Source: Neoechinorhynchus agilis (lineage: Eukaryota > Animalia > Acanthocephala). Taken from it: DNA of 64,000 bases. The stretch covers positions 12,254,784 to 12,318,783 of the forward strand of contig CM121341.1 in assembly GCA_051530055.1 (NCBI GenBank). Direction: 5' to 3'. The stretch's first letter is position 1, and the number at the start of each line of letters is the position of its first letter. Under the pieces are notes generated by a model. That model searched no databases and had not been told where the DNA came from. It saw only the letters and a list, made by a program, of their open reading frames with translations. Made by a program: the position numbers and the translations under genes. This document shows, piece after piece, positions 4,202-63,265 of this stretch.

Positions 4202-4690
4202 ATCTATTAATATTATTGCATGTTGTGTTGCAATTGGTTCGAACAAGTCTCATTTTCCAAAACAAAATTTATCGCTTAAGCAAGCTCTTGGTTCTACAAA
4301 ATATAGAAGTTTGTCAATTTTCATATGCGGAAAGTTTCTCAGATTTTCAAATATGCATGGATTATAAGACATTTCGTCCTTTTATGCATCGTGCATTTTG
4401 AAATCAAAGTCAATCACTCATATAAGATCACAGATAGAAAAATCCTTCAGGGTGATAGAATTCGACCTGTGGTAAACATAATCCCGGGCATGACTTAATT
4501 GAATTGTTGTTTAGGTCTACACCCGGTAAATGATTATTTATTAAAGACGTTTCGAGCCTCGTCGGGTTCTTCATCAGTTTGTTTGTTAGTAGCGTCTTTT
4601 ACTAACAAACAAACCGATGATGAACCCGACGGGGTTCGCAGAACGTCTTTAATAAATAATCGTTTACAGGGTGTAGATCTAAACAATAAT
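4202..4690. mobile_element. ~490 bp non-autonomous repeat ending in a palindromic double-hammerhead module, copy 1 (probable Penelope pLTR derivative)
   Basis: Near-identical to 16207-16695; the right ~190 bp is an imperfect inverted repeat. Confidence 0.75.
4543..4580 (-). ncRNA. Minimal type-I hammerhead ribozyme motif (family 1)
   Basis: aaa-CTGATGA-A-GAACC-cgacga-GGCTC-GAAA-CGTC-ttt: intact core, 4/5-bp stem II, palindromic ACGT stem III, 3-bp stem I. Confidence 0.65.
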
Positions 4691-4761
4691 TTCAATAGTA
4701 TTTATATCATGCAGTCACGTTATTTTTTATCAATGCAAATTTCTTTTTGTAAAATTATGTC

Positions 4762-5734: not shown

Positions 5735-6040
5735 TTGTTGAACTAAAACACATCGACATTCAGTGGACCCAGGACTCGAGGAGTTGCAATGCGATCCCCA
5801 TTTTGGAAGTTTTGATAACGCGACAAGGAGAAGAGTACAATTTCCGTATACAAGAAGATTGGTAACCGACAGACATTGTCTCCCTTCATCACAATGGCAA
5901 CATTTAAGTATAAAATGGCCAGGATTAAGTCGCTGTTTTGATCGTGCATACAACTACTGCTCCAACCTAGATTCCCTTAATAATAAATTTAAGATTCTTG
6001 GGCATATGCTCAAAGGAAAGGGCTACCCAATCTATGTGAT
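5735..6040 (+). mobile_element. Penelope-like element RT C-terminal remnant (frameshifted)
   Basis: HIDIQWTQD...IPILEVLITRQG resembles the PLE (N)IKFTME...LPFLDVLITR motif; then RCFDRAYNYCSNLDSLNNKFKILGHMLKGKGYP resembles the PLE RA..ICS..L..NGYP motif. Confidence 0.65.
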
Positions 6041-9000
6041 GAGAAGAGCTAGTTGCAGGGTCTTCTATGGTAGGAAAACAGTGCGCCAGGAGTCGAAACA
6101 AAGGACCTTCGTAGATGCGCCATTCGACGATGACCAAGCGTATTTTAACATGCCTTCACCTTGAACTCTGTTGTTGCTCATTGTCACTGATCACGGATTA
6201 AACTCATTTCGCTCCTTTACAGTCTTCGATTCTTTGTTATGATATCCCAGTTCGATCCGAACGTGATGAGCAATTGTGATCGGAATCTCGGTACGCTATT
6301 AAAAAATCCTCAGTTGAATTCCGCCATTAACCTTCATTTAAGAAACATTCGTTATTTGTTGCATTTTAAACGATTAGCATTATAACTACATTTATTAAAA
6401 TAACGTTCTAATGGTCGAATAATGAAAAATTAGCTGAATATTTTAAATAATAAAGGTTGGACGAATGTTTGATTATTTCGCGGAACGACATTCCAGTTCG
6501 ATCTGAACGTGATGGGCAATTGTGATCGGAATTTCGGTTCGCTTTTAGGAAATCCTTGGTTTAAATCCGCCATTAAACTTCATTTAATAAACATTTGTTC
6601 ATTGCTGTATTTTGAATGATTAGCATTATAATTACAATTATAAAAGTAATTTCTCAATAAAAGTTGTATATCGGTTTATTAGCGCTTATTTTTCATCCGT
6701 TATTGTCGATGCCTGAAAATAAGTTTAGAATAACCGTAATTTTGTGTGAAATCGATTAAAGTCCCAAATTGTTGCCCAGTGGATTTGTCGATTATTAATT
6801 GTTTTATTCTTCAAAGGATGCCCTCTCCAATGCAGGAAATACTCTGCAAGTGTTAGCGTGGACTGTTTCAATGAAATCTTCAATGTCCATTTGCTTTATG
6901 TGACTAATAACCTCTGCGACTTGGCTTAAAGATCGCGATTGGGTTGTAAATAAAACTCAAAGGAAGAAACGCCAATGGCGGCTACTTTTTCAACACAAAG
7001 ATCTACCTTTGATGAAAGTTCTTCGAAATAGCCACATTCACCTCGTTCAAAAACCAAAAATTCGTTGCAATTCGTTGGATGCGTTCCGACCGTGCAGAAT
7101 ATATTGTCTTAAATGGTGAAAATGCTTAATTCTGTAGAAATCAAAATATTCAAAAAAATTAAACGTTCTTTTTCACACTTTTGACTTTAGTTGAAATCAA
7201 AATGCTTCCTGTGCTCATAATGCATTTGTAAATACAGTCGATTCTCAAACCTGCGACGAGGTCTACACAAACTAAGTCAATAATAACTTATTTGTTTTCA
7301 AAAGTCGACATTAAACTTTGTAATAATTTTTAGTTTGAAGGTATTCAGGCGACAACTTACTGCCCGTTTTGTGATTACTTAAATAAGACTTACTGTTAGA
7401 TGTGGCCAATGAAATTGCTTCTTGTGTTGTCTTCAAATTAGTTCCGGTCACAATAATCTAATTTTACAAAGACGATTAATAATGTCATCTGCATAAACAA
7501 ACCACGCCAACTTTGTGCTCCACCGCACGATTGATTACATTTGTAAGATCCTCTTAAATAGAAAGCACTTAAAAATAATAACATCTTATAACTTTACGCT
7601 GGTGAACTTTGCGTCCATTGTATATTCCTTGATACATGAAATCTACCGCGAAATTATAAACGGTACTGTTTTATTTAAAAAAAAGATGAAACCTGTAAGA
7701 TTTGCACCCACATCTAAGAATACCTTTTCATTTAGATGCAAGATAAAAAGAATTTACCTATTAATCGTCGCCTCATTGACCTTTGTTAATCAGTGGTCAC
7801 TATTTATCTGGAAAATGTTATATAATAATACATTTTATTTCAATAGTACCCATGACATGATCTTTCCCTTAACCAAGCTTTTATTTTTTAATAATCATCT
7901 TTACTCCGTTTCCTATAGGAATAATTTTATTTCTACCGATTCCTTTTTCGTTCGGTGCATTTAAGCTTCCATAGGATTTCAATATTCTACTATAAACTAC
8001 CTTATCAATTCTATGTCTTATAAAGACAAAAAGAGCTGTTTTCATTAACTAATAGGTTAGTTTTTTGAAGGCAAGTAGGGGTATTGAGGAGCTAAGAGTT
8101 AGCTACTTGCTCAGCCCCCACTCCCTTCTTCGCTTTACTCTACCTTTAGATTTTACGTTGATTATTAGAATCAACTCAATCTAAAGAAAAAACTCATAAA
8201 CTAACAGTATGCGCGTATTAATAATAAATATCACGGATTAAACTCAATTTGCTCCTTTACAGTCTTCGATTTTTTGTTTATTGGTTTCTCCCACTCCTAT
8301 TACCAGTCGCCACATTGTCATTCTACTCTTCATCATCAAGATTTTTCGTTTCGTTTTCTACATCCTCCTTGGGCTTCGTCGTAACTGTCTTTTCCATTTC
8401 GTCGGTTGCAGGAATGCGTTTAATAACTCAGAATCATTGTGAATGAATGCATGAAAAGGCGGTGGAGACGGGCAGCAGCAATAGTTTTCTTTTTGAAAAG
8501 GAATTCATTGTAAGGGTGTTTGCAGATGCCGTTCAAAAAGATCAAAACAATGAAATCTAGAATGTACGCTCAGAGCTAATAAATATTGTCCATTTTTCAC
8601 AAAATCAGCGGGCGCGGAAACGCAATTTGTTCTTTGTAAAGTAGGATCTTAGATCTTCTAACGGAACGACGTGAGCGAAACGGACATTCACATCTAATCG
8701 TCTTTCTAGAAGACAAATGAATCAAGTCAATAGAACCCAAAAAGGAAATCAGCTCTTTGATTTTGCATTAAGTGATTTTCAAGAAATTAAAGTTGCACCT
8801 TAGCGACACGAGCATCTGCTTGCAGATTAATTACCAATGAATAACTTATTTTATGAAGATTTAACAGAATTAAATGTTTATCTATTGCTGCAGCTTAAAG
8901 ATTGCTTCATATGTTCGGTGACGTTTAGATTAAATTTAAATCCTTCATTACAATGCTTGGAATATATAGAAAGCTTGTGGGCTTGCTTTTATTAAGCTGG

Positions 9001-14136: not shown

Positions 14137-14303
14137 ATAGACTTATTGTTTAGAAGTCTCCACCCGATAAATAATTTTTTTATTAAAAACGTTTTGAACC
14201 TCGTCGGGTTCATCATCAGTTTGTTAGTTATTATGATGAACCCGACGAGGTTCGAAACGTTTTAAAAAATATTTACCTGCTGAACACCTAAACAATAAGC
14301 CTA
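14137..14303. mobile_element. Palindromic double-hammerhead element (family 1), both cores mutated
   Basis: Inverted arms around ATGATGAACCCGACGAGGTTC. The minus arm has AAAA in place of GAAA; the plus arm has lost CTG. Confidence 0.7.
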
Positions 14304-16206: not shown

Positions 16207-16695
16207 ATCTATTAATATTATTGCATGTTGTGTTGCGATTGGTTCGAACAAGTCTCATTTTCCAAAACAAAAATTATCGCTTAAGCAAGCTCTTGGTTCT
16301 ACAAAATATAGAAGTTTGTCAATTTTCATATGCGGAAAGTTTCTCAGATTTTCAAATATGCATGGATTATAACACATTTCGTCCTTTTATGCATCGTGCA
16401 TTTTGAAATCAAAGTCAATCACTCATATAAGATCACAGATAGAAAAATCCTTCAGGGTGATAGAATTCGACCTGTGGTAAACATAATCCCGGGCATGACT
16501 TAATTGAATTGTTGTTTAGGTCTACACCCGGTAAATGATTATTTATTAAAGACGTTTCGAGCCTCGTCGGGTTCATCATCAGTTTGTTTGTTAGTAGCGT
16601 CTTTTACTAACAAACTGGTGATGAACCCGACGAGGTTCGCATAACGTCTTTAATAAACAATCGTTTACCGGGAGTAGACCTAGACAATAATTCCA
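16207..16695. mobile_element. ~490 bp repeat with palindromic double-hammerhead module, copy 2
   Basis: Near-identical to 4202-4690. Confidence 0.75.
16548..16585 (-). ncRNA. Minimal type-I hammerhead ribozyme motif (family 1)
   Basis: aaa-CTGATGA-T-GAACC-cgacga-GGCTC-GAAA-CGTC-ttt. Confidence 0.65.
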
Positions 16696-16787
16696 ATCAC
16701 ATTCCCCGGTACATCACATATCGACATGACTTAATTGATTTATTAATTTATCATGCTTTATTATACATTCCAATATTAACTATGCAA

Positions 16788-28764: not shown

Positions 28765-30389
28765 CTTTTAAATTTTGAAATTATACCCCATAAATGGAAT
28801 CCTAGTAAAAATATCATGCTTTCTTCCGGCATCAACTACGTTAACAATCAATATTGTCTTGCACATTCCGATGAATCAAGTGTTCTTTTTTATTGACACT
28901 TAGACGGGTTGTTGTAATGATAAAGAAAAATTTTTGATTTGATCGTCGCCACTTCACCGGCTCCCGAAATTGTAATGGGCAATTTGTTCTTTAGCAATCG
29001 TATTCGGGCAAATGAAGTTAAACGGAACAGTTGATGAGTCGTCCGGTTTTTCCAGTCATATCTTCAAAAACCAATTTTCTCGAGGATGGAATGCCTCCTT
29101 ACGTTTTGGAGTATTCACTAAGCTGTGACGATTGGACTGGGTATCGTTTTAAGACAATCGAGTTCCGTGGTTTCCACTGCACCCAACTTGCATTTCGCAA
29201 GGATTGAGCAAAACACGCCGAAGCGAGACCAGAAGAGCGGTCATCCATTTGAGTACCAATCGACGAGATTGGTAAAGCGTAAAGAAAAGCACAGGGGTAG
29301 ACGTGATCGCCCTTTGTGGTTGGCACAAGAACCAAGGAAGTTTCGTAATAACGTTTTTGTATTGATTTATCAGTTGGGACAGTCAGTTGGATATCCCTAC
29401 TTCAGTTTTAAAGGATTTGTCATCAATTTCCGATCGGTCCGAGGGAAATGCCGGTAAAATTAGAGCGGTGAAACGGTTTGTTCGGGACACGAATCATCCA
29501 AAGACTGGGATTGTTATTTCTGTCGCGTGTAGAACACCAAAAGGTCCCAAGTAAATTGGGAGCGATGCTTAACGCCACAATGAGTCGAAAAGTTTAACAT
29601 TCGAAATTCCGGTTATTATGGAGCGGATTTCGTCGCCGAACGTGACAAGAGTTTCGATTTGAAAGCACGGTACATAGTGAAGGAGGAAATTCGTTTTCGG
29701 TACGACAAGGCAGTGTTGAATAAACTTTTTTCTTTCACTCTTAAACAATGCATTTTTGCTGCCTTCATGTTGCAGCAACTTCGAAACCTTTTCCAGAAAA
29801 TGAAAAGGTATTCCTTTTATGAATAAACAGGAAGTCTAACTACCTCGCCGAAGAGATCACAAAAAATCGCGAGCCTTCATGAAATCATGACTTTGTGCAT
29901 TAATTGCGTACGATTAAATGCAAAGAAAACTATGTAAGACATTAAAAATGCGAGTTCTAGCTCTAATCTTGACTTTTGTAGTTCTAATAGCAATGTTAAG
30001 AAATCTGCGGAACTTACTAGTCAATTTCGTGGCTTGCGAACCCGAAGTAGCGCATCCTATTGAGAACGTTCGACAAGGTCCTCCCGAGGAAACACAGCTT
30101 TGATGGCAACAACCTCGCAAAGGACCACCTTTCGTGTATACACGTCCAAGGTTGATAGCAATTTGTCAATTCTGTTGGTTAAATAGAACGTGATCCTCAA
30201 AGGTGATCCAGAATTCTTGGAAGAAGATTATGCCGCGAGAAGGCTACAGAACAGCGGACCCTGACAGATTGGGACTCCGGTGATTGCCGCTGTGCAGTCA
30301 ACTTATAAAAACTATGGATCTGAAATCACGCAGTCAGATACAAGTTCCCGGGTGGGCTTAAAGGCAAACCCAAATATAAAGGGCAAATG

Positions 30390-32882: not shown

Positions 32883-33680
32883 TCATTCTGCTTCAGCAAA
32901 GCTATTGAGATGTTGTTCGGTTTCTTGTTCGTTTAATATTCTAAATCGTGGATTATTTTTGGACACAATACCGATCTCAATATCCCATGGTTTAAAATCT
33001 GAAGCGAGTACTTCAGCAAGGACCGATATTGCAGTTCGAATCGTTTCATCTTCACTCAAAAGCTTATCGCGTCCACATTTTCTTTCCAAAATGGTATTAG
33101 CTTCCAATCTCTTCACACCAGCACTCGTGGCATAGAATCCAGTATAATAGCCAGCTGGATCTGTTTTAAACAATTGAGGACCACGTTCAGGATCCAATCC
33201 TATTAAAATCATACTACACCCCAGCGGTCTCATCATTGCTTCTTGAGTGTATACCTGATTGATATCGGCAATACGACGACACAATTGATCGACACTAATT
33301 TCCTGACCGTTGTTGTATTTCCATTTAAATCAAAACTCTATTTGGATAAAAACGAAACTAAAGTTCAAACGGAGTTTTAACTTAGCAGCTTCACTTCGTG
33401 CTCGGGCTACTTGACTTCTTGAATCGGCTATCAGACCAGTCATTACGCATCCGATATATTGAGTGAGCTTGAACATATGAGTGACACTGCTCTTATCCAT
33501 TAGAGTGTCCGGAACTTTACGCTGGGTTATGATCACGCAACAGTCCTTGCCTCGGACGCCGAGAGAAGTGAAACCAGCTTGGTTGACAGCTTTAAAGGCG
33601 TATTCCACTTGATAGATACGTCCTTCAGGAGAAAAAATAGTTATATCCCGATCAAAACCCGCACTTTGAGCCCGAGACAT
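32883..33680 (-). CDS. PSMA6: Proteasome subunit alpha type-6 (2 exons; 57-nt intron ~33325-33381)
   Basis: [31 protein letters not shown]...ARSEAAK|[20 protein letters not shown]...DPAGYY; colinear with alpha-6 over its full length. Confidence 0.95.
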
Positions 33681-33857
33681 ACTTGTTAAATAAGCGAAAC
33701 GAATGTAGTGGAACTTTCGATGAGAAATGAAACAGTGAATTTCTTTCTTATATTCCGGCGTAGCGCTTTATACACGAGTTTTATGACAATGAATTCGCCG
33801 GATTAAAACGGTACAATTCTTTAGAATCCAGTGGTCTACTTGGGATCCTCATAAGTC

Positions 33858-34880
33858 ATCAACTTTTTCTTTTAAATGGACACTTGAACGGACTGTTGTA
33901 ATGACAAAAAGAAAAATCTTTGAGCTTTCGCCGTCTTATTACTTCTTCAGAACTTGTTTGCTGAGGAAAGTTCAAGTAACGGTTTTTTTTGCCACAAATC
34001 AACGGGTTGTGAAATTCGATATCAGTCAAACGACCGAAATTAAACAAATTGAGCAAAACGGCGGTTCATTAAATCGTGTTAAATACTAATTCATTTTTAG
34101 CCCCATAATTGATCAACTTTTTCTTTTAAATGGACACTTGAACGGGCTGTTGTAATGACAAAAATAAAAATCTTTGAGCTTTCGTCGTCTTATGACTTCT
34201 TCAGGAATTGTTCGCTGAGGTTCAAGTAACGGTTTTTTGCCACAAATCACCGGGTTGTGAAATTCGATATAATTCAAACGACCGAAATTAAACAAATTGA
34301 GCAAAACGACAGTTCATTTAATCGTGCAAAATACTAATTAATTTTTAGCCCCATAATTGATCAACTTTTTCTTTTAGATGGACACTTGAACGGGCTGTTG
34401 TAATGACAAAAATAAAAAATTTTGAGCTTTCGCCGTCTTATGACTTCTTCAGGAATTGTTTGCTGAGGTTAAAGTAACGGTTTTTTTGCCACAAATCACC
34501 AGGTTGTGAAATTCGATATCATTCAAACGACCGAAATTAAACAAATTGAGCAAAACGACAGTTCATTAAATCGTGTAAATACTAATTAATTTTTAGCCCC
34601 ATAATTGATCAATTTTTTCTTTTAAATGGACACTTGAACGGGCTGTTGTAATGACAAAAAGAAAAATCTTTGAGCTTTCGCCGTCTTATGACTTCTTCAG
34701 GAATTGTTTGCTGAGGAAAGTTCAAGTAACCGTTTTTTGCCACAAATCACCGGGTTGTGAAATTCGATATCATTCAAACGACCGAAATTAAACAAATTGA
34801 GCAAAACGACAGTTCATTAAATCGTGTTAAATACTAATTAATTTTTAGCCCCATAATTGATCAACTTTTTCTTTTAGATG
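33858..34880 (-). repeat. Tandem array of 4.1 x ~250 bp units, each with a hammerhead-like core (family 2)
   Basis: Unit starts at 33858, 34112, 34360, 34608 and 34860. CTGAAGA-A-G..C-GAAA-GCTC on the minus strand at 33922-33950, 34176-34204, 34424-34452 and 34672-34700. Confidence 0.9.
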
Positions 34881-35227
34881 AACCAAAATCTCACAACATT
34901 TTTAATTTTCGATGTAATACTCGAACATACACAAAAGAAATAAAGCAAGGAAATAAGCAATTTTTTAGAAGAAATCTGACTTTGAATGTAAAGGTTAATT
35001 ATAATTTAAGTTACAAAATCAACCTACAAACTTCTTATATTGTATTTAATAGACGAAAATAGTTTCTGTGATTTATTACAAACATGAAAACCATCGATAA
35101 TCTTTTTTCTGAAATCGCTTTTCGTTGATGCATTAATTTAAGGAATAATGCAAATTTTAAAAGGGTTCAAAATGACGATTGACGAGGAGGTAACGGAATA
35201 TATGATTAGAAATTTTATTTTTTGCAC

Positions 35228-35352
35228 GGGTTCATCATCAGTTTGTTTTGGTGTCTTTTTTATAACGAACAAACTAACTATGAACTTGACGAGGTTCGAA
35301 ACTTATACAGTGCAACAACATAAATATTTACCGGGCGAAGACTTCTAAATAA
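35228..35352. mobile_element. Degenerate palindromic double-hammerhead element (family 1)
   Basis: gggttcatcatcagtttgtt ... aacaaactaactatgaacttgacgaggttcgaaac, plus the flank aaatatttaccgggcgaagacttctaaa shared with 14137-14303. Confidence 0.6.
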
Positions 35353-35640: not shown

Positions 35641-36617
35641 ATGAAGGTTAAAATGAAGGTTGGCAGCAGCGGCGGGTGTTCTCAATTTCTTAACAGCATT
35701 GCCTCTGACGATGTATTTAAGCAATGTTCAGAGTTTAGGTTTGTTTGGGGGTAATTTACGACCAACATAGTTGTCGGTTATTTTCCAGCACACCAGGAAT
35801 CGAAATAGGAGAAGAACTTAGTTACAATCCTTTAACACCGCCGTTGAGAAGAGATACATCCACTGCAACTGCTGAACAATGTGAAGTGATAAAAAATCCA
35901 TTCGGTTGCATTCGTTTGTCTCCTAGTCAGACAAAACTGGGAGAGAAATCCCAAAAAGTGAACTCCGACTTTAACGCGGACATTCATGATAAATGTGAGG
36001 AAGTTTATGATGTACTTGAGACCATAAAAAGAAAAGTCAGGAGGACTTTTGTCAGCATTAAGGACGAAAGTGGAAAACTAAGGTGTTTTTGATTTTTTAT
36101 TCCTTGTAAAAAATCAAATCCAAGTAATTGATAGGTACTTGTCCAATGAACATATCTTCGAAGAAGACATGCGTAGTATTTCTTTTAATAAACAAACCAA
36201 TCAATCGATCGCTTATGGCAGTTGGGATGATGACGACTTCTATTATCCGGCCAAGATTATAACGAAAATGCCAAATAATCAGTTCGAACTGCTCTGTGAC
36301 GACGGCTTCAAACGAACGATCGACAGTAATCGTATTATTGAATTTTCATTTTTAAAGTCAGGAACTCGTCTAATGGCTCAGATCCGTAAAAATGTTTTCA
36401 TGCCCGGTGAAGTAATCGATATGGTTACGGACAATCAGGTTCAGATACGTTTAGATAACGGTGTTGAACAGTTATTTAAGCATTCTGATATTTTGTTCAG
36501 CCCTGATCAAGCGGAACTGCTGAATGGGTCGCATGAACAAGATAATATTTCCTATTAAGGCACCTAATAAGTAGCGGGAGTTTGAGTTTGGACGATGATT
36601 GTATTAAGAGATCATGA
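35641..36617 (+). CDS. Short 53BP1-like tandem-Tudor protein (inferred 4 exons)
   Basis: AYGSWDDDDFYYPAKII..FELLCDDGF..ILFSPDQAELL parallels 53BP1 VAKWSSNGYFYSGKI..YKLLFDDGY..VILSLEQGNRL. Canonical introns link the ORFs; the last exon is tentative. Confidence 0.65.
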
Positions 36618-57186: not shown

Positions 57187-57582
57187 CAGGTTTTGTTTTT
57201 TAGTTGACACTTTGGCGGGTTGTTGTAATGATAAAGAAAAATCTTTTTCGACATTCTCGACGCGAGTTGGATTTGTTGCCAAGGACTCGGTGGAACTATC
57301 TATCACCGAAGCACTACCTATATCCCTGGCGGTTGGAAGGGGATGGCGCTTCCGTAGACAATGCGAGGGGGAGTTTTGAATATCAGCTCCGCAAATTCCA
57401 GGAATTAATCAATAGCCTGGGCGAACTTCCCGCTTCGATGTCGCTACTTTAACACATACTTTACATCTTCACGTGCCTTTGTAGATTCCTGAGGAGGCCG
57501 TAAAACGACCAAAGCTTGAGAATAAAGATTTTTCTTTATCATTACAACAGCCCGAACAAGTCTCATTTAAAAACAAAACCTG
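57187..57582. mobile_element. 396-bp element with ~60-bp inverted termini made of the family-2 hammerhead-flanking module
   Basis: 57187-57246 is the reverse complement of 57524-57582. The right arm carries CCTGAGGAGGCCGTAAAACGACCAAAGCTT, homologous to the 34 kb array unit. Confidence 0.75.
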
Positions 57583-61623: not shown

Positions 61624-63265
61624 CAGAAATCTGAAGTGACCAGAACGTGGCTTTGCTGCGCGGAAAACACATAACGAACGAAGTATCCGCTTTCCGTAAT
61701 CCACGCGGCTGATACTACCCTCACGCGGCTCTGACAAATTGTGGAAATGTTTTCTTAGATATTTGAGGAAACATGAACTTTGGAGAACCACAGAACTAAG
61801 TGAACAAACATTCGGTTTTTTTGGATTAGAACCGATTACAATGATTGAAGAATGCTTTTATCGTAATTCAAGCGTGCGGTTTCAAGAAATTGTGAAATTA
61901 TTTGATTGAAAAATCGGAAAAGACGGAACATTTGGAAAATCATGGCCCTGGGAAGCGACTACTGAACCACTGGTTCCTATCAACGAACAAAATTATTTCC
62001 TACGGAAAGATAGAAAAAATGCCTTTAATAATATATTAATGTTACAGTTTGCTCCATTGTAGATAACTAATTGATTTCAGCGAGCGTCGGAAGCTAGAAC
62101 ATTCTTTAAGAATTAAATTAGACATTAAGGAGGAAGAATAAAGATTCGCAAATCCTTTAATCAGATTCTACAAATTGAGAATACTTCAAGTCTCACCTTT
62201 AATGATGTAAATGGGGAATCGTACCGTTTGTGATTGTCAGGGATTACTCGCGAAATCGCATAGAAAGAATTTCGGATGTTCAACTACATGGTTTTTTATT
62301 TACTTTTGCCTAAATTATTGTAAATAGTCTAAAATGGCAAAGTTTATCTTCTTCATCAGACTACTTTGATATTCGCGCCCTTCATTTGATAGGTTAAAAA
62401 ATAATTCCGGATCGAACCCGTAACCCACTTAAAAATCAAAAACCGCATTCTTTGAACAAATCTGAACTCAAGTGTTCATGAGGACCCATAGGAGAACATG
62501 GGTTTAATTCTTTGTTAAGTAACAAAGAAAGGTGTTATTATAGACAATTTTCGTCGGGGTGAATTTGATTCGAGTTTGGCGAACGCACATATTTAAAAAC
62601 TTACAAGCAATATAACTGAAGAGGTAAGCAAAAAGCCTACGAAATATTTTAAAATAAATGATCAATACCAACAGCAATCCGGGGGAAAAACATCGCCAAA
62701 CTCGAAAGGTTATTATTATAATTAATATCAGGTTCTAGGTTAATCTGTTTTGTTAAAAGTAGTTAGCGCGTTCTTTTATTGGCAAAATTTTCTTATTAAT
62801 ACGAACATTCGTGAGTATTTTTAGTTTATAATCATGCGCAAAATATGTTGAGCTTATCGGTGGGAAAGTAGAAGTTTTTGAATGCGTGGATTGTAGTCAA
62901 AAATTAAAGGTGTGCTTTTTATTGCATTGATTGATACTGATTAATAGCGCTTTTAAAATCGAACAAAATCTAGTGTCGATTTAAATTTTTTAATTCACAT
63001 CGTCTTGGCAGTTGGATATCTCTGGAAATTAAAAAACTCATTATTCATTGCGCTTTAATATAAGTCAAAGGTACTAGATTCGTGTTTAAAAAGTCTGTGA
63101 TTTATTTTATAGAGCAAGAACTCTTCTCGGCGAGACGAAAATGCAAATTGTGCCGTGCGAGGGAATGAAATTTTGATTATAAAGTCTCTTTTTACCTGTA
63201 TTCGTCTGTAAATTGAACATAAAGAGTTTATTCCTTAGGATTAATATTTTCTCAACAAAAAGAGT

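Follow-up and report, generated by a model that had tools for sequence, protein, structure and literature searches.

A tandem array of Penelope-type hammerhead units, probably decayed, upstream of the proteasome gene PSMA6 in Neoechinorhynchus agilis

A short tandem repeat lies directly upstream of PSMA6 in the genome of the acanthocephalan Neoechinorhynchus agilis, and each of its units carries a core resembling that of the hammerhead ribozyme. The question raised by this locus is whether it is a working self-cleaving array or the remains of a mobile element. The window analysed is a stretch of 64,000 nucleotides (contig CM121341.1, positions 12,254,784 to 12,318,783, forward strand), to which all positions below refer. 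A sequence-only reading had described the repeat as a retrozyme-like locus. The explanation considered likely here is that the array is a decayed head-to-tail multimer of about 1 kb, built from a short non-coding, non-autonomous derivative of a Penelope-type element (PLE), with hammerheads that probably do not self-cleave.

The repeat is observed directly. Tandem Repeats Finder (TRF) returns positions 33850-34880 as one tandem array with a period of 248, 4.1 copies and 93% matches, in agreement with the four units of ~250 bp first noticed. In the unit alignment the units are pairwise 91-95% identical. The cores listed below are given with their scores under R2, a covariance model built from ten PLE-linked hammerheads of other families, with the array and its own family excluded.

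33847..34883, minus strand: tandem array of four full 248-bp units and a partial unit (TRF, one-unit BLAST against the window, unit alignment)
34883-34633, 34632-34385, 34384-34137 and 34136-33883, minus strand: the full units of the array (BLAST)
33882-33847, minus strand: partial unit of 36 nt, stopping ~13 nt beyond the family 3' tail (BLAST, unit alignment)
34672..34700, minus strand: minimal hammerhead core of unit 1, units being numbered from the upstream end (R2 21.4 bits, E 0.025)
34424..34452, minus strand: minimal hammerhead core of unit 2 (R2 23.6 bits, E 0.007)
34176..34204, minus strand: minimal hammerhead core of unit 3, with a G->A change giving ACGAC (R2 23.1 bits, E 0.0096)
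33922..33950, minus strand: minimal hammerhead core of unit 4, the closest to PSMA6 (R2 14.9 bits, E 0.89)
after 34672, 34424, 34176 and 33922, minus strand: predicted cut positions of units 1, 2, 3 and 4 (motif reading)
34604..34671, minus strand: family 3' tail of unit 1, AAAGAUUUUUC...CAUUACAACAGCCC...UGUCCAUUU...GUUGAUCAAU (alignments)

The array is non-coding, with only short, chance-like frames in the ORF list. The hammerhead segments of its units have 33-40% GC, and the window has 37%. The pattern CTGANGA..GAAAGCTC has exactly four matches, one per unit and all on the minus strand, and none in 100 shuffles, which bears out the claim of a single core per unit with a palindromic AGCT. In unit 1 the core consists of CUGAAGA, an extra A, stem II GUCAU/ACGGC with an A.C mismatch, GAAA, the palindromic AGCU and C17. 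The catalytic boxes C3-U4-G5-A6-N7-G8-A9, G12-A13-A14, A15.1/U16.1 and H17 are complete in all four units (CUGAAGA...GAAAGCUC). One unpaired nucleotide, the extra A, stands between A9 and 10.1 and is followed by G10.1-C11.1, both in every array unit and in the dispersed family to which the units belong. Helix III is replaced by a palindromic 15.2-16.2, AGCU in all units. As helix III amounts to just this palindrome, the predicted hammerhead could act only as a dimer.

The 248-bp unit is composed of a PLE-type minimal hammerhead, an AC-rich family 3' tail, a post-tail linker and a shortened 5' segment. In the 46.2-Mb assembly (102 contigs), only the last ~78 nt and the first ~30 nt of the unit frame recur elsewhere, namely the core and the tail of ~75 nt that follows it. 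Alignments place the tail segment of unit 1 in the dispersed copies and after every core of the array. A BLAST search of the genome with one unit recovered at least 35 partial copies at ~80% identity. At least 150 copies of the dispersed family were found with R1, a family covariance model of core and tail segment made from 25 copies; both R1 and R2 cover only the ~54-nt RNA motif. The family reads AAUUC/CUGAAGA/A/GCCGU-AAG-ACGGC/GAAA/GCU/C/GAAAAU, with a helix II of 5 contiguous pairs and a helix I of 3 bp beside the cleavage site. Every catalytic box is kept in 16 of 61 distinct dispersed copies, and both helices as well in 10 of the 61.

The genome offers abundant PLEs to which such a family may be related. 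It holds at least 150 GIY-YIG matches, and one locus (L079) combines RVT_1 and GIY-YIG on a single strand in the manner of a PLE. At six loci (L035, L075, L078, L084, L085 and L086), a hammerhead built like that of the family comes within ~10-110 nt after a GIY-YIG frame. A cross-family descriptor (CUGANGA, 0-1 extra nt, stem II of at least 4 bp, GAAA, a palindrome from A15.1, H17) was run over the fetched loci and returned ten more minimal hammerheads, whose stem II sequences are unrelated. All 21 descriptor matches of other families have the extra nucleotide and G10.1-C11.1, and neither is required by the descriptor. The palindromes in the other hammerhead families of this genome are AAUU, AUAU or ACGU.

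In the alignment of the ten hammerheads (A3), covariation is 0.437 compared with 0.163 in shuffles, none of 500 shuffles reaches the score and 9 of 12 pairs vary on both strands; part of the signal in stem II and helix III is forced by the descriptor that selected the sequences. Helix I, which the descriptor did not ask for, is formed in 9, 9 and 7 of the ten sequences at its three proximal positions. Within the family itself, 25 copies are 73.2% paired against 73.2% in shuffles, with nothing above chance. The covarying stems sought in genomic copies were therefore recovered across families but not inside this one. The within-family test is uninformative because transposon copies decay neutrally, and what supports a ribozyme is accordingly the family consensus together with the cross-family comparison.

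No family copy joined to a reverse transcriptase or endonuclease frame was found in the sequence downstream of the copies in two loci (L047 and L087), with the family model on the GIY-YIG loci, or by tblastn of PLE reverse transcriptase/endonuclease against the fetched loci. The proposed link from the family to a parent PLE is one of architecture and genome context only. An apparent adjacency of family and PLE at another locus (L013) was rejected; it consists of a PLE stump with its own hammerhead beside an unrelated head-to-head insertion. The arrangement of family copies is a further point of comparison with PLEs. Among the 150 R1 matches listed, the opposite-strand pairs within 600 bp are all head-to-head with tails outward (9 of 9; two-sided binomial ~0.004), and the two arms of one inverted pair (L031) are unequally truncated at the 5' end. 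Head-to-head pairs with unequal 5' truncation are consistent with a PLE enzyme acting on both target strands by cleavage and extension (PMC11167929).

A further member of the family lies in the window at 57.5 kb and had served as the comparison for the array units. It belongs to a sister subfamily of 330-407 bp.

57192..57582, plus strand: copy of the 330-407-bp sister subfamily (alignments, BLAST)
57247-57582, plus strand: body, motif and tail of this copy (alignments)
57192-57246, minus relative to the copy: inverted, strongly 5'-truncated tail preceding it (alignments)
57478-57531, plus strand: motif of the copy, with G12 -> C (alignments)

The copy does carry the helix I 3' strand, as gagaat after GCTT (gaaaat or ggaaat in the family), but it is not an intact hammerhead either, since its G12 is a C. 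The body upstream of its motif recurs at least 40 times, mostly from the same 5' position. The sister subfamily also forms arrays. Two have 407-bp units, with 10.8 and 10.6 copies, both on chromosome C1 at ~113-197 kb from the window, and an array of 336 bp x 2 is present on C2. No unit of the 407-bp arrays has an intact core; CGAAAG is replaced by CAAAG (G12 -> C) in 16 of 20, and the AGCU palindrome is lost. The array of 10.6 copies (L074) is the only one whose ends were read; it begins at the 5' end of the element and stops at the tail, with a linker of ~75 nt between successive units.

Outside tail and motif, the 248-bp unit aligns to the 407-bp linker and 5' start, with a local score of 55 against 29.4 +/- 4.5 for shuffles (maximum 47). 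The two units are therefore related, the 248-bp one being shortened internally. By this homology the 248-bp unit is element-derived throughout, and its tandem junction is inherited and was not made at the PSMA6 locus. Captured flanking or PSMA6 sequence was considered as the source of the non-tail part and rejected on the same homology.

The alternative with the most in its favour, possible though doubtful, is that a single or double insertion was multiplied in place by unequal crossing-over or replication slippage, and that no multimeric cDNA was inserted. A 4-nt insertion and a TTTTTC variant are common to the outer units and absent from the two inner units, and because outer and inner units share different indels, later rearrangement inside the array is still likely. 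Both array ends fall within the same part of the unit (BLAST), and inspection of the array ends reveals no recognisable target-site duplication, as amplification of DNA at the site would allow. A unit that is wholly element-derived, with an inherited junction, nevertheless argues against simple co-amplification of the PSMA6 flank, and flank sequence is not repeated in the array beyond ~13 nt (sequence, BLAST). The formation of arrays by sister subfamilies at several loci also speaks against amplification in place.

Insertion of a multimer copied by a PLE enzyme is the preferred reading, and the lineage of the array is instructive in this respect. The units share a deletion of 6 nt, and this deletion occurs at three loci only, the array and two solo copies (L005 and L011), all within ~0.43 Mb of chromosome C1. 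L005 starts at unit position 101 and L011 inside stem II, and both end at the family tail. Both are retroposed copies, truncated at the 5' end and made once the deletion was in place. Solo copies with different 5' truncations and the family tail end mean that the lineage was mobilised after the deletion, and therefore that helix I was not needed for mobilisation. The array cannot be shown to be the source of L005, which is not nested in the diversity of the array units.

It is proposed that the array was formed by reverse transcription, that it was mobilised in trans by a PLE and that cleavage was lost. The observations underlying this mechanism are the PLE-type motif, the fixed tail end, the 5' truncations, the head-to-head pairs, the inherited tandem units and the abundance of PLEs. 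A PLE reverse transcriptase/endonuclease supplied in trans would recognise the module of motif and tail. The AC-rich tail would be where reverse transcription starts, in line with a published model of internal initiation. The enzyme would copy transcripts longer than one unit and would often stop early, giving rise to arrays that end at the tail with a variable start, 5'-truncated solo copies and head-to-head pairs. The lineage has lost the 3' strand of helix I (6 nt) and has a weakened helix II, and the array would be a decaying relic. Lineages with damaged hammerheads, through the deleted helix I strand here and G12 -> C in the neighbouring 407-bp arrays, still spread and formed arrays. This agrees with the report that PLE insertion in vitro is independent of ribozyme cleavage, hammerhead mutants leaving it unaffected (PMC11167929).

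The state of the helices bears on whether the array motif could still cut. In all four units the tail segment lacks, at its start, the six bases that pair with UUC in helix I (GAAAAU or GGAAAU in the family), as the comparison with the 57.5-kb copy had indicated. Helix I is thereby reduced to two A-U pairs and, beside the cleavage site, an A.C mismatch at 1.1-2.1, which is short of the ~4-5 bp of a PLE-type minimal hammerhead; intact family copies have 3 bp. Helix II of the array reads G-C, U.G (or U-A), C-G, an A.C mismatch and U-A, and so falls below a run of at least 4-8 contiguous bp. An additional C->A change in unit 4 (GUAAU) leaves 3 of the 5 pairs. The unit at 34204-34176 has ACGAC where the others have ACGGC, and the G->A change pointed out earlier does convert U10.2-G11.2 to U-A; it is one-sided and is not covariation. 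The 8-nt pair acttgaac/gttcaagt, said to enclose every core, is present in three of the four units, while the unit near 34470 has actttaac.

The predicted folds of the array RNA are not those of a hammerhead. In the fold of a 126-nt segment the outer 8-9-bp pair forms, while the interior is not a hammerhead (z -0.16), the prediction placing the CUGA and GAAA boxes in other pairings. The unit RNA has a minimum free energy of -38.9 kcal/mol compared with -44.6 +/- 4.3 for shuffles (z +1.34), and the opposite strand has z +0.63. RNA folding of the array thus gives, as modelled, no sign of selected structure. The outer 8-nt pairing is peculiar to the array lineage, and the matching part of the tail varies among family copies.

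Covariance models from Rfam did not recognise the motif. A scan of the window at gathering score returned no hammerhead and no other family, the hammerhead models gave no match in the region 33700-35000 even at E<=10, and RF00163 (Hammerhead_1) gave none across the genome at E<=1. Minimal dimer-type variants lie outside the coverage of these models. R2, applied unfiltered to the window on both strands, finds all four units with the scores listed above (14.9 to 23.6 bits, E 0.007 to 0.9). Copies with an intact stem I do exist in the genome, and these family members, with their 3-bp helix I, score 30-43.5 bits under R2, the array units being 15-20 bits lower. As R2 finds the units well below intact copies, the array motif belongs to the PLE-type hammerheads of this genome but is a poor example of them. 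Since the helix I 3' strand is lost and helix II is weakened, the array hammerheads are most likely inactive or nearly so, and the possible inactivity suspected from the weak stem I is thereby strengthened.

An active retrozyme locus is consequently unlikely. It would require that neighbouring units fold as double hammerheads and cut after each GCUC, that the 248-nt linear RNAs be ligated to circles and that read-through transcripts be trimmed before PSMA6. Such activity could draw on CUGAAGA, GAAA, AGCU and C17, intact in all four units, on a tandem layout that provides a partner for the palindromic helix III, and on the position of the array on the PSMA6 strand, ~170 nt from the ATG. The complete boxes are compatible with residual function, the four units not being independent of one another. 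Inactivity cannot be read from sequence alone, given that a helix I of 2 bp has been reported for the PLE hammerhead of Drosophila virilis (PMC4209133) and that a PLE hammerhead has been found to cleave only in the presence of protein (PMC11167929). These points are opposed by the mismatched helices, with a second helix II defect in the unit closest to PSMA6, by the deficit in R2 score, by folds that sequester the CUGA and GAAA boxes with a stability not above shuffles (z +1.34 and -0.16), and by the confinement of the lineage to 3 loci. Even consensus minimal hammerheads (min-HHRs) of PLEs cleave poorly in vitro (PMC4209133).

That an ordinary AT-rich satellite happens to hold the CUGAAGA and GAAA boxes is scarcely credible: the absence of any Rfam hammerhead match, at gathering score or at E<=10, and of within-family covariation would suit such a chance resemblance, but the pattern occurs 0 times in shuffles, the family carries all the published PLE-specific features, R2 finds the units after training on unrelated PLE-linked hammerheads, and the same architecture follows PLE endonuclease frames in the same genome.

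The neighbourhood of the array comprises the following features.

33333..33680, minus strand: PSMA6 exon 1, with the ATG at 33680 (ORF list; Pfam Proteasome and Proteasome_A_N; PDB relatives)
~33284-32886, minus strand: PSMA6 exon 2 (ORF list)
~35200-35350: decayed element of another hammerhead family (R2 scan)

The best solved (PDB) relatives of exon 1 are proteasome alpha type-6 chains; the two exons, separated by an intron of ~50 nt, were searched separately and not as a spliced model. The array, on the PSMA6 strand, ends ~170 nt before the ATG, close to the ~180 bp first estimated, and the identity of the gene as an alpha-type subunit is upheld by Pfam and PDB. The encoded protein differs from human PSMA6. 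An AT-rich spacer of ~2 kb separates PSMA6 from a divergent gene starting near 35745, and much of it is filled by the array and the decayed element. The array is most likely a decaying relic, and no result points to an effect on PSMA6. Read-through transcripts could be cut before PSMA6 only by a motif that has stayed active despite its damage. The unit-length linear or circular RNA and the read-through cutting that had been envisaged find no support in the sequence, and the deletion, the mismatch, the R2 scores and the stability of the unit argue against them. It is very improbable that adjacent units still cut as protein-assisted double hammerheads and process array-initiated or read-through RNA ~170 nt before the PSMA6 start codon. 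The cuts would then define where a housekeeping mRNA begins, or would release a 248-nt RNA circle from the promoter region.

The array is of little weight alone, being a further relic of the well-described class of PLEs, minimal hammerheads and their tandem derivatives. The Rfam hammerhead models miss this whole class, and a small model from the same genome recovers it. Like the array, newt satellite 2 and Schistosoma Sm-alpha are short repeats with a type-I hammerhead that needs a dimer since its helix III is weak. Their helices I and II, however, are canonical and make tertiary contacts, their cleavage has been demonstrated and Rfam Hammerhead_1 recognises them, whereas the array matches no Rfam model.

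The term "retrozyme-like" is apt for the array by probable ancestry. It is a head-to-tail multimer of a short non-coding unit with a Penelope-type minimal, dimer-style type-I hammerhead, and related arrays exist; this much of the original designation holds, while the motif is not a canonical type-I hammerhead with loop-loop contacts. Metazoan non-LTR retrozymes contain canonical type-I hammerheads in which helix III is short and the loops of helices I and II are in contact (Cervera and de la Pena 2020, PMC7229834; Li et al. 2026 preprint, 10.64898/2026.07.22.740005). They are numerous, give abundant, highly base-paired circular RNAs and are thought to be non-autonomous PLE derivatives (PMC7229834; 10.64898/2026.07.22.740005). 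The array is similar to them in its non-coding, low-GC tandem repeats within 150-450 bp, with one type-I hammerhead per unit. It differs in its minimal PLE variant of the motif, in the restriction of its lineage to 3 loci and in a unit RNA that is not unusually structured.

A signature of partial-tandem pLTR and 'tail' has been described for an autonomous vertebrate PLE with a hammerhead at the junction of pLTR and ORF (Frangieh et al. 2024, PMC11167929). The units here differ in lacking a reading frame, and in the PLEs of this genome the motif follows the endonuclease frame. The family is otherwise alike in its tandem or partial-tandem copies, its fixed 3' end in an AC-rich tail past the hammerhead, its 5' truncations and the use of both target strands, which yields inverted pairs. 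The spread of motif-defective lineages (6-nt deletion, G12C) is consistent with insertion that does not need cleavage, as in that system (PMC11167929).

The closest comparison is with the min-HHRs of PLEs, for which four features outside the search descriptor have been published: a nucleotide between 9 and 10.1, G10.1-C11.1, a palindromic 15.2-16.2 and a frequent pairing of motifs on opposite strands at distances of 100-700 bp (Cervera and de la Pena 2014, PMC4209133). The array lineage differs from them in being without the helix I 3' strand and in its mismatched helix II, and a family copy within a full PLE was not found among the fetched loci. The dispersed family shows all four features. 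It is also alike in the CUGANGA and GAAA boxes, the short helix I, the lack of a real helix III, the high copy number and the mostly solitary or opposite-strand paired motifs, and the endonuclease-encoding PLEs of this genome carry the same architecture.

A second family of minimal hammerheads is present in the window, beside the dispersed family of Penelope-like element (PLE) type to which the 248-bp tandem array upstream of PSMA6 belongs. Its motif reads CUGAUGA-A-GAACC...GGYUC-GAAA-CGUC, and its elements are laid out as head-to-head palindromes of ~200 bp each. In the window scan, its three motifs score 23-29 bits with R2, an independent covariance model built from ten minimal hammerheads of this genome, with the array and its family left out. 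The hammerhead and PLE traces of the window are as follows.

Hammerhead and PLE traces in the window
4536-4587, minus: second-family motif, R2 match, in an element at about 4499-4695
5837-6050, plus: PLE reverse-transcriptase (RT) fragment, a short tblastn match (E 1e-5) to the RT of L079, a PLE locus with RVT_1 and GIY-YIG on one strand
14178-14229, minus: second-family motif, R2 match, in an element at about 14137-14303
16541-16592, minus: second-family motif, R2 match, in an element at about 16506-16697
28904-28979, minus: heavily decayed tail of the array's family, core degenerate
35200-35352: decayed copy of the palindromic family, ~320 bp upstream of the array
62312-62369, minus: weak R2 match
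62606-62658, plus: minimal hammerhead with palindrome AUAU, the top R2 match of the window (31.3 bits, E 1e-4)

The last of these hammerheads is possibly one half of an inverted pair. The RT fragment lies near the palindromic element at 4.5 kb. The decayed palindromic copy stands beside the array, and therefore at least two PLE-type insertions have entered the PSMA6 spacer. Within PSMA6 itself, an intron of ~50 nt (about 33381-33330, minus) separates the protein segments 'EAAK' and 'FKWKYNNG'. Read in the frame that the protein implies, this intron shows no GT...AG ends; its ends are formed by the inverted repeats AAAACTC...GAGTTTT.

Tandem arrays were also found elsewhere in the genome, among them those of L073 and L074, two chromosome C1 loci carrying a sister subfamily of the 248-bp unit.

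Tandem arrays outside the window
L073 5649-9997 (C1, about 12.058-12.062 Mb): 407-bp array, at least 10 units
L074 4731-9026 (C1, about 12.139-12.143 Mb): 407-bp array, at least 10 units
L074 832-2569: 261-bp tandem repeat, 6.7 copies, 87% identity
C1, about 1.4538-1.4582 Mb: GIY-YIG matches at ~410-bp spacing
C2, about 4.5493-4.5545 Mb: the same
C2, about 5.2048-5.2132 Mb: the same
L086, a locus with a hammerhead after the GIY-YIG frame: the same

The ~410-bp GIY-YIG series on C1, C2 and L086 are PLE 3' stumps without RT, set in tandem arrays, and every such stump has the start of the endonuclease and a minimal hammerhead. The 261-bp repeat of L074 shows no kinship with the 407-bp array 2 kb away. 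The two 407-bp arrays lie in opposite orientations, separated by about 77 kb, and nearly all of their hammerhead-like motifs carry a G12 to C change and have lost the palindrome. The largest arrays are built by a subfamily whose motif is dead, and which spread all the same.
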